A DNA stretch of 45,175 nt from Chlorokybus atmophyticus (GCA_009103225.1 RHPI01000560.1:60070-105244); one strand, 5' to 3'; numbered from the stretch's first letter, positions 4,882 through 10,207 are shown. The notes: generated by a model not told the origin, from the letters alone. Numbers and translations: made by a program.

Positions 4882-6654
4882 TTACTCCTTATCCGCGCGC
4901 ATGGTGCTGTAGCCCACTCTGGTCTGCTGCCTGGCCTTGCTGGTGGCGGTCTTGCCCTGGATGAGGCTGCGGCGGTAGCTGCTGCTGCTGCCATAGCCAC
5001 CAGGAATGGCCACCTTCTCCTCCTCCTCCTCCAGGGCCATCAGGGCTGGCATTCGTGCGGTGAACTCCTCCACGCCGAAGATGTCTGCCACCTCTGCGCA
5101 TGGCACAACATCCGTATGAGCGAGATGACATTCGTTGCGATTGTGAGTGCGTGTGACATGTGACTATGTGCGCACCATAGTCTGCTTCAGTGCCATAGAG
5201 GAGGCCTAAGCCGTGCTCGTTTGTGCCGTGGGTGACAGGCACGCCATTGCTGTCGTAGCGGACGCGCACGGTTTGCCCTGGACAAGTTGACATGATCAGC
5301 CACAGAGAGAGAGAGAGAGAGAGAGAGAGAGNNNNNNNNNNNNNNNNNNNNNNNNNNNNNNNNNNNNNNNNNNNNNNNNNNNNNNNNNNNNNNNNNNNNN
5401 NNNNNNNNNNNNNNNNNNNNNNNNNNNNNNNNNNNNNNNNNNNNNNNNNNNNNNNNNNNNNNNNNNNNNNNNNNNNNNNNNNNNNNNNNNNNNNNNNNNN
5501 NNNNNNNNNNNNNNNNNNNNNNNNNNNNNNNNNNNNNNNNNNNNNNNNNNNNNNNNNNNNNNNNNNNNNNNNNNNNNNNNNNNNNNNNNNNNNNNNNNNN
5601 NNNNNNNNNNNNNNNNNNNNNNNNNNNNNNNNNNNNNNNNNNNNNNNNNNNNNNNNNNNNNNNNNNNNNNNNNNNNNNNNNNNNNNNNNNNNNNNNNNNN
5701 NNNNNNNNNNNNNNNNNNNNNNNNNNNNNNNNNNNNNNNNNNNNNNNNNNNNNNNNNNNNNNNNNNNNNNNNNNNNNNNNNNNNNNNNNNNNNNNNNNNN
5801 NNNNNNNNNNNNNNNNNNNNNNNNNNNNNNNNNNNNNNNNNNNNNNNNNNNNNNNNNNNNNNNNNNNNNNNNNNNNNNNNNNNNNNNNNNNNNNNNNNNN
5901 NNNNNNNNNNNNNNNNNNNNNNNNNNNNNNNNNNNNNNNNNNNNNNNNNNNNNNNNNNNNNNNNNNNNNNNNNNNNNNNNNNNNNNNNNNNNNNNNNNNN
6001 NNNNNNNNNNNNNNNNNNNNNNNNNNNNNNNNNNNNNNNNNNNNNNNNNNNNNNNNNNNNNNNNNNNNNNNNNNNNNNNNNNNNNNNNNNNNNNNNNNNN
6101 NNNNNNNNNNNNNNNNNNNNNNNNNNNNNNNNNNNNNNNGCATAGTTGCGCCCCTTGCCCTCCTCCGTTCTGCCCTCACCCTGTTCACCGTCCCAAGTCA
6201 GTGCACACAACAACAACGACAACAATACCAACAACAACAACGACGACAACGACAACGTCTGCAGACATGCCTGGAAGTTGAACTTCTGGGAGTTGAAGCC
6301 GGTGAAGTGCGGGTCCTGGCACCCGGAGGCGTCCGCCAGCATACAGGAGCAACTGCAATCACAGTCGAAGTGATCTATGCAAATCCCCGTCGGGACGCCG
6401 TCCGCGTATCTGTCAGTCTCGCAGGAAATGCTGCAGAAGCCGTTGCACTCTTCGCTGTTGGGGCAGCTGACTGTACTGCAGGTGGCGGTGCCATACGGCA
6501 CGCACACTCCCGGTCCCAGTAAGAAGTTGCACCCCGCACCGTCAATATTCGCTGCGCACTCCGCTGCAGTGGCCGGGATATGTAGCAAGAGCAATGCCGC
6601 CGCGACTGCCGCCAGCGACAACAAGAGAGTTCTCCCTACCATGACTCGCGCCAT
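4882..6654 (-). CDS. Copy B: secreted Cys-rich + VWD/root-cap-like protein. Exons 6654-6271, 6180-(gap), (gap), 5277-5176, 5093-4882
   Basis: Signal peptide MARVMVGRTLLLSLAAVAAALLLLHIPATAA; 13-Cys module; GCQDPHFTGFNSQKFNFQ|GEG...RNY; GC-AG intron 1 with CTGAC branch point. Most of exon 2 and all of exon 3 fall in the N gap, whose size fits copy D's span. Confidence 0.8.
5332..6139. other. Assembly gap (808 N) next to a (GA)n tract
   Basis: N run. Confidence 1.
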
Positions 6655-8334
6655 GCTGACGTGCCTTGGCTGCTACCCAACAGAAATGCACGCACAATGC
6701 TTTCTCTGCTGTGCATGCACCTGTCTTGAGTATATATAGTAGCGGCAGCCACAACGCAATGCGACAGCGACCCCAAGCAAGGCTCAGCAGTGCGTGGGCT
6801 TGAACCGGTCCCTTGCCGCACGTGCGGGTGGTACAGCTCGGGCAAGCCGCCGCACGTGCATCACACACACTGGCCCGAATACACCGCTTTGAGCTTGACA
6901 CAGCAGGGGTGGTGCATGCCAAACACACGCCTTTCCAATAGTAACTCGTTGATTACCTACCAGTTGCTCAGCCATTCATCCGACCGGACTCTCAAACCCC
7001 ACACATACTCGTGATAGAGAAGCCTCTGCTGCCTGTGAGTAATTGCTTTGCTTTTGCTGTGTTGCGTACGTACAACATTGCATGCCACGGAGAGCGTCCA
7101 GCACTACGAAAGCGTTTAACGTAATAATAAGCGAAACCCCTCCGCGTGTCTCTGCTTCCTTTGTTCCCTTGCATGCCACGGACAGCGCCCTTGCCCATGC
7201 ATGTAGGGCCTGCCACGCTAGGCCTACATTGCGGGCGCATGTTCTTGGCCGCTTGCGGCACACAACCAAAGACTCCTTCCCTTGACCCTGTGCACATGCA
7301 CACACGTTGCGCTCTCGCTGGCTGGCTGGCTGGCTCACGGCAGTGCAAGCAGCGTAAGCAACGGGTTTCCACATGCGCCGCACCCCGAGGGGAAAGACAC
7401 ACAGAGGAAGAGGAGTTTGGTTCTGCGACGCACGTGTGCGCGCAGGCCCGGTACCGTTCTTGGGCAAGCCGCAGGACGCACGTTACGTGTCTTGAAGACA
7501 CCTATCGTGTAATACAGGTTGTGGAAGCCTGAACCACTACGCATATGCGTCGTAAGTTACTTATGGCTACTAACCCGGCGACGGCGCAGCCAGGGACGAG
7601 AGTCCGGTCTCTTCTTGCTGCGCGTGCGGTGGTACATGTTGGGCAAGCCGCCACAAGCATCACAAACCAACCAGCGTGCCGCTAGGGGCATTAGGCCTTT
7701 GTGTTGGCTTTCAGCGTCGGTTTGCTACCGTCCAGTCCTTGTTGTTATGTGCGATAGAGCGCCGTGCCCCGCGTGGCCAATGCACGAGTGGGGCCCCACT
7801 GGCCCATGCCGTGCGTATGGCCACGCGGGTAAAGTGGGCAGGGCGCTCCCCAGCAGACGCCAAGCCTGCAAGTGCCAGCTTTTACACAACTCTTAAAGCC
7901 CTAAGAAGACAGAGGCCCATGCATGGAGTAATGGCGTGGGGTCATGGGCAGCTGATGGGCAGACAACTTGTTGGCAAATACCAGTTGGGGGTGTCATTGA
8001 CAATGACTTGTTGCGCTAGCTGTGACGGTGAAGCGGCAGTCACGCAAGGTGATGCTGCCCGCATGCCGCGCTGTCAACTATGGCCCACCAGCAACCGTTG
8101 TGCAAGTGGTACAACAGCTGCTGAATGAGACTGTACACGTGATGCGTCGGCTTGCCCAAGAAGTACGACCTGCCATGTGCTGGAGAATCCAGCCGACTGC
8201 CGATCTCAGCCAACTCCTACTACTTGCTGCCGCTAGCTCCTCTAGTGTCTTCTGTCTCCGCCTGCGGCCCATAAACATGAAAGAGAGAGAGAGAGACAGA
8301 GAGAGACAGAGAGAGAGGATGGGAAGGGGCGCCG
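6655..8334. promoter_or_regulatory. Putative bidirectional promoter between head-to-head copies B and C; TATATATA at 6731-6738; repeated GGTAC-N-GGGCAAGCCGC motif
   Basis: Divergent ATGs at 6654 (-) and 8335/8353 (+); motif at ~6830, ~7450 and ~7630. Function is inferred from position only. Confidence 0.45.
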
Positions 8335-10207
8335 ATGAGTAGCATCTTCATCATGGGAACAACCGTCCGCATGTCGCTGGCCATGGCGGCAGTGGTAGCG
8401 GCGTTGCTGCTGCTGATGCGCGTCCTCAGCATCGCTGGACACAAAGGGATTCTGTGGACTTGGGGCTGGGCCAGATATGAGGGTTCCTGCCAGAAATTGA
8501 AAAACGGAGCACCGAAGTGCAGGGCGGACCCCTGCCCGTTAGGAAAAAGTACCTGCTCCGGCACGGGTGAAGGCTACGAGTGCGACCCCATGTTTAAGGA
8601 TGGTAAGTTCTTGGGAACCTGCTACGTCATCCCCAATAAATGCACTTGCTCCTGTCCTTGCCCCGTAAAGTAGAAGAGTGCCGGCGGCGCCACCACCTCG
8701 GCGAGTGGCTGCGGGGACCCACTCGATCGGCTTCAACTCCCAAACGTTCAACTTCCAGGCACGTGTCCAGTTTGAGTTGGGTTGTTGTTGTTTCTGTTGT
8801 TGTCACACGGTGGTGGTGGTGGTCGTTGTTGTCGTTGCTGCTACTGGAGTTGCTGCTGTTGTGCTGGTCGTTGTCGTTGTTGTTGTTGTGTGTACTGACT
8901 TGGGACGGTGAACAGGATGCTGGGATGACGAAGGAGGGCAAGGGCCGCAACTATGCACTGGTGTATGATCCCGAGACGGGCTTCTGGCTTGCAGCGCACT
9001 TCTCCGAACCCGGCGCCATCCCCACGCGTTCCGCCAACACCTACATGACCGACATTGCCATTGAGATCCCCTGCACCGGACCAGTCCCCCATTCGCCTCA
9101 TCGCTCAGGTACACGCACACACGCGCACGCATGAATGCACACGCGCACTTAGGACACACGCACACGTGCACGCGCACGCACAAGTTGACTTGTGCACATG
9201 TTGTTGTGATGTGAACCTTTGGACTGTGCAGCACAAGGGAGACATTGCGGGAGATATGCCGGCATTTATGATGGTGGCGTGTTCTTTGCGGACAACGGCA
9301 CGCGTCTGGAAGGGGATGACATTGTACTGAGTGGCGGCGTAGTGGTACCCATGTGGGAGCAGTGGGCTGTCGTGAGGGTGGCGCCTCGGCCTTGCAATCA
9401 CTGTCTCGTTCGAGGCCGCGCACGTCAACTTCAACATGAATGACGCCATGGGCCTGTCTTAGTCTGCAAATGGAGTCCTCGGTAAGGATGCCCACTCTGA
9501 CTTTCTGTGTCATACCACGCTGTTGCAACAAGTGTAGCGTTTCTTTGCACTCTCTCTCTCTCTCTCTCTCTCTCTCTCTCTCTCTCTCTCTCTCTCTCTC
9601 TCTCTCTCTCTCTCTCTCTCTCTCTCTCTCTCTCTCTCTCTCTCTCTCTCTCTCTCTCTCTCTCTCTCTCTCTCTCTCTCTCTCTCTCTCTCTCTCTCTC
9701 TCTCTCTCTCTCTCTCTCTCTCTCTCTCTCTCTCTCTCTCTCTCTCTCTCTCTCTCTCTCTCTCTCTCTCTCTCTCTCTCTCTCTCTCTCTCTCTCTCTC
9801 TCTCCGTGCAGGACAAACCGTGCGCATCCGCTACGACAGCAACTGCGTGCGCGTCACCCACGGCACCAACGAACATGGCGCCGGCATCCTCTACGGCAAC
9901 GAAGCAGACTACGGTGCGCACTATACCACATGTCACTCACGGTCACAACAACAACAGTCAGCTGTCACTCACATTGAAAACCCCATGCGCAGCGGTGGAG
10001 GACATCTTTGGCGTGGAGGAGTTCATCACACGAATGCCAGCCCTGCTGGCCCTGGAGGAGGAGGAGGAGAAGGCGGCCATTCCTGGTGGGTATGGCAGCA
10101 GCAGCAGCAGCTACCGCCACAGCCTTGTGCAGGAAAAGACCGCCACCAACAAGGCCAAGCAGCAGGACAGAGTGGCCTACACCAACATGCGCGTGGACGA
10201 AGAGTGA
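8335..10207 (+). pseudogene. Copy C (exons 8335-8758, 8916-9108, 9232-9481, 9812-9913, 9993-10207); exon 1 still encodes a ~106-112 aa secreted Cys-rich peptide
   Basis: TAG after CTCSCPCPVK; -2 at the DPH motif; +1 at the end of exon 2 (193 vs 192 nt); -4 and -2 plus TCT TAG TCT in exon 3 (250 vs 256 nt). Confidence 0.85.
9551..9803. repeat. ~250-bp perfect (CT)n in intron 3 of copy C
   Basis: Direct read. Confidence 0.95.

Follow-up and report, generated by a model that had tools for sequence, protein, structure and literature searches.

A 45,175-nucleotide (nt) stretch of Chlorokybus atmophyticus DNA (GCA_009103225.1 RHPI01000560.1:60070-105244; the window, with positions counted from its first letter) was analysed by self-comparison and six-frame reading, and was found to carry one gene in five copies, here called A to E. 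The window is eukaryotic in character, containing introns, (CT)n microsatellites and retrotransposon fragments. Alignments of exons 4 and 5, and of the segment from intron 1 to exon 3, divide the copies into type 1 (A, B and D) and type 2 (C and E), with B(-)/C(+) and D(-)/E(+) arranged as head-to-head pairs. The gene specifies a cysteine-rich N-terminal head on a longer body that opens with a DPH motif, and it is the B/C pair, at positions 4,882 to 10,207, that allows both head types to be read.

Copy B (type 1; 4882-6654, minus strand) begins with an exon 1 of 128 codons (6271-6654), the open reading frame (ORF) of which is intact from the ATG at 6654. Its product consists of a signal peptide of ~31 amino acids (aa), a ~79-aa acidic head that contains 13 Cys and ends in CDCSCSC, the linker MLADASGCQ and then DPHFTGFNSQKFNFQ; the segment DPHFTGFNSQKFNFQ|G spans 6295-6315 in B, with 36808-36828 as its counterpart in D. 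Intron 1 (6181-6270) is 90 nt long, stop-free and of the GC-AG class, and the GC donor is found in both types (CAG|GCATGT in type 1, CAG|GCACGT in type 2). The (GTT)n-rich 3' half of this intron, along with its branch/acceptor region, is also kept between the types. The visible start of exon 2 (6140-6180; GEGRTEEGKGRNY...) enters an assembly gap of 808 N (5332-6139) that covers the remainder of exon 2, intron 2, exon 3 and part of intron 3. Exon 4 (5176-5277, +/- 2 nt) encodes (G)QTVRVRYDSNGVPVTHGTNEHGLGLLYGTEADY and is flanked by phase 1 introns, and exon 5 with its stop codon (4882-5093) encodes an acidic, Ser-rich hydrophilic tail ending in RADKE*. The phase, together with the splice junctions HGVLG|QT and ADY|D, is confirmed by a database gene model of the 3' half of copy E (EukProt Chlorokybus_atmophyticus, jgi Chlat1 Chrsp127S01871; here P0002), which was found with exon 3 of copy D.

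All visible B exons (1, 4 and 5) are open, and because both edges of the gap are collinear with D it is plausible that B continues across it, the frame of the hidden exons being unread. The right edge falls within B exon 2 (...GRNY; 6140 corresponds to 36653) and the left edge within the (CT)n microsatellite of intron 3 (5331 corresponds to ~35918), and the interval in D measures 734 nt versus 808 N in B. Simple addition of exon lengths, with exons 1, 4 and 5 taken from B and exons 2 and 3 from D, gives a full type 1 coding length of 384 + 192 + 256 + 102 + 209 = 1143 nt, or 381 codons in frame. On this numbering the motif D114-P115-H116 is preceded by 113 residues, and the stretch from DPH to the C-terminus measures 268.

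Copy C (type 2; 8335-10207, plus strand) opens with a head ORF (8335-8673) for a signal peptide followed by a 10-Cys basic head that ends in CTCSCPC-PVK; a TAG at 8671-8673 closes this ORF. The rest of exon 1 (8674-8758) encodes the linker and GCGDP(H)SIGFNSQTFNFQ, the Pro codon of which has lost 1 nt at ~8720. Exon 2 (8906-9109) contains a +1 frameshift near 9072. In exon 3 (9232-9483) there is a -4 at 9267/9268, together with two lesions private to C, a -2 near 9380 and a TAG at 9460-9462. The interval 9812-10207 comprises exons 4 and 5, the intron 4 that separates them and the stop codon. With these six lesions C is a pseudogene, as the initial annotation had suspected. We considered an extra intron that might bypass the TAG and the frameshift in C, and rejected it: the sole GT..AG candidate is 41 nt long and of the wrong length class (1 mod 3 would be needed), and B reads straight through the equivalent stretch.

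The TAG, the 1-nt deletion, the +1 and the -4 of C are all common to copy E (type 2; 36911-39214, plus strand). In E the +1 and -4 occupy the same sites (~37370 and ~37570), for a net change of -3 in which the frame is regained after ~28 out-of-frame codons; E also carries a private 15-nt insertion with stops. The DPH motif of both copies is destroyed by the 1-nt deletion; type 1 reads QDPH, and type 2 reads GDP followed by a broken H codon, formerly GDPH. A second gene model, P0004 (Chrsp127S01870), represents a sixth copy, of type 2, that lies outside the window, is 79% identical to P0002 and is without the -4 of C and E. Because C and E carry the same stop codon and the same three frameshifts, type 2 must have died before the C/E duplication, which dates to ~13% nucleotide divergence ago.

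Copies D and E are truncated at their 5' ends and fused to one another at 36910, a single deletion having removed both of their 5' halves along with the divergent promoter between them. In either copy its breakpoint lies at the homologous DG codon of the head (B G86, C G90; 36900-36920 in the window, compare 6397 and 8603). Copy D (type 1; 35457-36910, minus strand) retains exon 2 (36502-36693), exon 3 (~36049-36304), exon 4 (~35761-35862) and exon 5 (35457-35674), all four of them open, but its start is missing. Copy E contains an assembly gap (38206-38714) inside intron 3. Copy A (type 1; 1-518, plus strand) is represented by exons 4 and 5 only, since the window begins within its intron 3 microsatellite, and is 94.8% identical to D and 90% identical to B. 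Only B, and perhaps A, could thus be functional.

Translation of the B and C heads bears out the shared cysteine scaffold that the initial annotation had described, which runs C-x4-CP-x4-C-x7-C-x13-C-x5-CDCSCSC in B and C-x4-CP-x5-C-x8-C-x12-C-x6-CTCSCPC in C. The heads are also oppositely charged, as had been claimed, although the acidic count for B is one higher at 11: the mature B head contains 7 D and 4 E against 1 R and 0 K, whereas the mature C head contains 3 D and 3 E against 9 K and 2 R. The N-termini of the two proteins, MARVMVGRTLLLSLAAVAAALLLLHIPATAA|E in B and MSSIFIMGTTVRMSLAMAAVVAALLLLMRVLSIAG in C, both read by eye as signal peptides, in keeping with the secreted-type protein that had been proposed.

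The five copies display only two head types. B and D are identical in the part of the head that D has kept, the C and E heads differ at 3 of 22 visible residues, and the basic head is present only in dead copies. No head-bearing copy beyond those in the window was recovered by word searches, an exhaustive search of representative sequences or metagenome scans. There are, then, two head types and no repertoire. The initial annotation had named uniform heads in other paralogs as a finding that would speak against its reading, and within each type the heads come close to this: B and D share 99.2% identity across 258 nt spanning exon 1, intron 1 and exon 2 (6140-6397 versus 36653-36910). The 3' halves of the same two copies (4164-5331 versus 34773-35918) are only 87.5% identical, a mosaic that is best explained by a recent gene conversion. 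A second such patch may exist in type 2, where C and E differ by ~4% in intron 4 and by 15.5% in exon 4 (16 of 103 nt; 8 of 35 residues; 9811-9991 versus 38802-38983), making the exon more diverged than its intron and suggesting that exon 4 may have been converted from another copy. Duplication, gene conversion, deletion and pseudogenes are all represented in the cluster, consistent with the gene birth and death that had been put forward for it.

To place the head against the body we compared the two types exon by exon; dN/dS (the ratio of nonsynonymous to synonymous change) and most of the identity counts that follow are rough hand counts on alignments and involve small numbers. B and C share the signal peptide, the cysteine scaffold, the DPH..FNFQ strand and alignable exons 2, 4 and 5. 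Close alignment of exons 2 to 5 had been reported, which overstates how even the body is: identity is 87% nt in exon 2 (D versus C), 83.5% nt and 83% aa in exon 4 (B versus C) and ~77% aa in exon 5 (B versus C), and exon 3 is only 53% identical in amino acids between the types (39 of 73; D versus P0004). In the heads, DNA identity between B and C is ~40% by MAFFT (79 of 197), or 44% over 49 aligned codons, falling to a random-like 34% once the nine Cys codons are set aside. Blastn aligned the signal-peptide core (80% identity over 31 nt) and, further on, the GC.DPH strand (80% identity over 66 nt), but returned no similarity for the head that lies between them. At the protein level the local score of the two heads is 51 (BLOSUM62) versus 31.5 +/- 6.1 for composition shuffles, 16 of 2000 of which reach 51, while composition-adjusted BLASTP of the mature heads gives E = 0.072 with 9 of 26 identities at the DG..G.C..C.CSC.C end. 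Head and body thus do differ in divergence, although the change from one to the other is graded and not sharp.

The body itself appears to be under purifying selection. Exon 4 of B and C differs at 17 of 103 nt, with 7 single synonymous changes and 6 of 35 residues replaced, and the centre of exon 2 differs at 10 of 100 nt, with 7 single synonymous changes and 2 replacements that stem from one 2-nt codon change and one single change. These figures correspond to a body omega of roughly 0.1-0.2, and type 2 therefore functioned for a large part of its history. For the head, evolution at a faster-than-neutral rate cannot be demonstrated, because the neutral markers between the types are near saturation: intron 4 is 63% identical (50 of 79), and 52% when its splice ends are set aside; introns 1 and 2 cannot be aligned in their interiors; and similarity in the 3' untranslated region ends 17 nt past the stop codon. 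When only the codons of conserved residues are considered, synonymous differences amount to 8 of 15 in the head and ~15 of 59 in the body. This synonymous excess points to an older head or to conversion of the body, and not to selection on amino acids.

As to what the body might be, the initial annotation had assigned it to a VWD/root-cap class. The motifs on which that assignment was based are present, the body carrying both the DPH..GF..F.F start and an HGVLGQT motif that is split by intron 3, but in the profile hidden Markov model searches VWD found no support and Root_cap stayed below its threshold. VWD (PF00094) gave no match at E <= 10 in any exon, read-through ORF, P0002 or P0004. The Pfam signals on P0002 are confined to LSESAHGVLGQTVRV, where Root_cap (PF06830) reaches E = 0.12 (13 bits versus a cut-off of 27; profile positions 6-20), and Root_cap did not match P0004 or single exons. 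The same ...HGVLGQ stretch (P0002 residues 22-48) gives a slightly better ITI_HC_C (PF06668) signal, with E = 0.015 and 15.3 bits, likewise below its cut-off of 27.

The description that the gene fits is that of the root cap proteins (RCPs; PF06830). These possess a secretion signal, a variable N-terminus of ~100 aa and a beta-sandwich domain, and they end with a root cap motif of 60 aa that contains GVLGQT (Raymond 2024, 10.1101/2024.01.29.577848; Prochazkova et al. 2024, PMC10796529). Their domain begins with DPH in unicellular streptophytes and with DPR in land plants, and together with the root cap motif spans ~250-280 residues (10.1101/2024.01.29.577848; PMC10796529). RCPs are streptophyte-specific and present in Mesostigma, and their N-terminal portions have been called 'highly variable' and are of unknown function (PMC10796529; 10.1101/2024.01.29.577848). 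They are made by outer root-cap cells, and have been found in the secretome and the extracellular polymeric substance (EPS) fraction of the charophyte Penium (PMC6027541). The Chlorokybus gene parallels this layout in its secretion signal (by eye), its variable N-terminus (113 residues), the DPH at which its domain starts, the 268-residue length of that domain with GVLGQT inside it, and its streptophyte host; its multiple copies are likewise common among RCP families. It differs in that it falls well short of the Pfam threshold and retrieved no RCP in sequence searches, in that its head is a Cys-rich module ending in CxCSCxC without relatives, in its acidic, Ser-rich C-terminal tail, and in that the family is seemingly confined to one cluster in which most copies are dead. 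From these features we consider that the gene probably encodes a divergent RCP-type protein, its membership of the family being unproven.

Several points limit this assignment. No Pfam family exceeded its threshold with any single exon, with the stop-free read-through ORFs, or with P0002 and P0004. A phmmer search with exon 3 of D (86 aa) against 1.84 billion representative sequences retrieved no RCP and only P0002 (two bacterial matches proved to be spurious, low-complexity HYR/adhesin repeats). AlphaFold2 returned models too poor to use, with a mean predicted local distance difference test (pLDDT) score of 38.6 for P0002 with a 9-row alignment, and of 50.5 when the structure of the heads was predicted from the B/C alignment, as the initial annotation had proposed. 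Finally, exons 2 and 3 of B are concealed by the assembly gap and the integrity of B is to that extent unproven. Other searches were similarly unproductive. P0002 and P0004 were the only relatives to emerge from word searches, for which P0002, the head ORF of C and exon 1 of B served as queries and whose length window excludes full-length proteins of ~380 aa; sequence searches of the PDB with P0002, B exon 1 and a profile gave chance matches only; the ESM Atlas held no usable match for P0002 or the B head; and no relatives turned up in metagenomes scanned with exon 2 of D and with the mature portion encoded by B exon 1.

Other known systems were also compared. In the streptophyte alga Ancylonema nordenskioeldii, AnIBP (DUF3494 plus a DPH domain; PMC10796529) likewise places a distinct N-terminal module on a DPH/root-cap carrier body, but its head is an ice-binding beta-solenoid, whereas that of Chlorokybus is a small disulfide-rich module with no assigned fold. 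The GDPH-autocleaving VWD domains of mucins, FCGBP and RGM (PMC10880436) are similarly extracellular, with a (G)DPH that opens a beta-rich domain and Cys before it. Chlorokybus type 1, on the other hand, reads QDPH without the Gly that precedes the Asp of the cleavage motif, and lacks both a Pfam VWD match at E <= 10 and the C8 and TIL partner domains. Any relationship to the ITI heavy chain C-terminal region (PF06668), an animal family to which the match is sub-threshold, would be remote.

Taking this evidence together, our preferred interpretation, to which we give a probability of roughly 0.6, is that the locus is a cluster of RCP-like genes for a secreted protein, comprising two old paralog types of which type 2 is dead, with a product destined for matrix or mucilage. 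The initial annotation had gone further, seeing in the head a recognition or adhesion determinant under diversifying selection, carried on a constant body in a birth-and-death family like those of self/non-self or defence. The head is indeed the most diverged part, with its non-Cys codons at 34% nt identity and third positions identical at only 10 of 40, against 52-63% in intron 4 and 83.5% in exon 4, and the opposite net charges and the history of duplication and loss are what such a family might present. Five copies with two head types that are near-identical within type are not, however, and all visible basic-type copies are pseudogenes with shared lesions, no further paralogs emerged from word, representative or metagenome searches, the neutral markers are too near saturation for any excess of rate to be shown, and the synonymous counts given above lead back to age or conversion. 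A variable head does not by itself point to self/non-self, because a variable N-terminus on a DPH body has already been described for RCPs (10.1101/2024.01.29.577848). We regard the diversifying-selection account as unlikely; what stands of it is the divergence of the head, and what does not is a hypervariable recognition family, since only two kinds of head exist, the basic kind is dead, and no excess of rate could be measured. A mosaic history is a possibility to be held tentatively, and one compatible with our preferred interpretation: the heads would be far older than the apparent age of the bodies, conversion between inverted neighbours homogenising exons 2-5 and halting at the head. The drop in B/D identity between the 5' and 3' segments, the C/E contrast of intron 4 with exon 4, the higher synonymous count in the head, and an intron 1 that is ~85% identical between types at its 3' end, whereas neither its 5' half nor the head can be aligned, would all follow from such a history. 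The counts are nonetheless small and hand-made, codon bias could also restrain synonymous change in the body, and with exon 3 at 53% between the types any conversion must have been patchy.

It is also necessary to ask whether the gene is an RCP at all, or a lineage-restricted orphan with a convergent DPH and HGVLGQT, or else something nearer to the GDPH domains of animal-type VWD and ITI heavy chain C-terminal proteins. That no Pfam family passes, that ITI_HC_C does slightly better than Root_cap on one and the same stretch, and that exon 3 finds nothing beyond the Chlorokybus genome would suit such a view; we hold it to be doubtful in light of the host lineage, the domain order, the DPH start, the domain length and the place of GVLGQT, all of which fit the RCP description, and of the missing VWD match even at E <= 10. 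That the two heads are unrelated modules acquired by exon shuffling, sharing their Cys pattern by chance, is less credible again, despite the BLASTP E value of 0.072 and the lack of head similarity by blastn. Seven consecutive Cys spacings agree to within one residue and both heads end in CxCSCxC; the DG in the longest loop is conserved, and the D/E deletion breaks both copies at precisely this codon; and the signal-peptide core and the DPH strand can be aligned within the same exon, with the score of the heads reached by only 16 of 2000 shuffles. More far-fetched still is the notion that the acidic and basic heads are, or were, co-evolving, interacting partners, driven from a single bidirectional promoter and mounted on a common DPH scaffold with possible Asp-Pro release or re-tethering at (G/Q)DPH, in effect an early-streptophyte pair for cell-cell or cell-matrix recognition of which the basic partner has decayed in this strain.

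Under the RCP-like interpretation, the cluster would have grown as two old paralogs in head-to-head arrangement, type 1 with an acidic and type 2 with a basic head, were repeatedly duplicated as a pair. The body would have been held by purifying selection, and the head would have kept its cysteine framework only, losing other similarity. Loops of small disulfide-rich modules usually lose similarity. Type 2 would then have died, acquiring its stop codon and three frameshifts ahead of the C/E duplication. The D/E pair lost both 5' ends in one central deletion, and gene conversion would have patched parts of the copies. By analogy with RCPs, which pass into root-cap mucilage and into the medium of a charophyte alga, the product would most likely reside in the extracellular matrix or wall, or the mucilage, of the alga. 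There the DPH beta-sandwich might act as a shared scaffold or as a means of oligomerisation, with the charged, Cys-rich head perhaps doing the binding; candidate ligands of the acidic head are cations and basic or neutral polymers. It is conceivable that the Asp-Pro bond undergoes self-cleavage, as in the GDPH motifs of VWD domains (PMC10880436), although the QDPH of type 1 is without the Gly of that motif.

If the gene is truly RCP-like, it would provide an early data point for the DPH body as a general carrier of varied N-terminal modules, and a Cys-rich-headed RCP-like gene would offer a small protein to express and test. RCPs comprise ~2000 streptophyte proteins with essentially no known function, and Chlorokybus, along with Mesostigma, occupies a basal position among streptophytes. 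Combining a variable head with a constant body is an already described RCP trait and is not new in itself. For now, the locus is chiefly a neat case of duplication, conversion, deletion at the centre of a palindrome, and decay in a repeat-rich region.

B and C diverge from a common intergenic region of 1.68 kb (6655-8334), presumably a bidirectional promoter. Within it a TGGGCAAGCCGCC-like motif occurs four times (6839-6851, 7461-7473, 7640-7652 and 8146-8158), three times in direct and once in inverted orientation and with <=1 mismatch, each time as part of a GGTGGTACA..GGGCAAGCCGCC repeat of ~28 nt. This motif is a candidate for a shared regulatory element or for the remnant of a repeat.

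The JGI models cover only the 3' halves of two type 2 copies and each begins at an internal Met, while type 1 is without any model; that of P0004 also skips HGVLGQTVRVR. Exact look-ups of the genomic context of P0002 and P0004 returned nothing on record. A long (CT)n microsatellite is present in intron 3 of every copy (1-90, 5282-5331, 9547-9806, 35900-36040 and 38100-38780), and both the start of the window and the two large assembly gaps coincide with it. Between the gene pairs lie fragments of Copia-type retrotransposons at 10325-10864 (minus strand) and 15350-16198 (plus strand), with matches to SH3_retrovirus (E = 1e-21) and RVT_2 (E = 1.5e-36), and several dispersed repeats are found at 10.5-33 kb.

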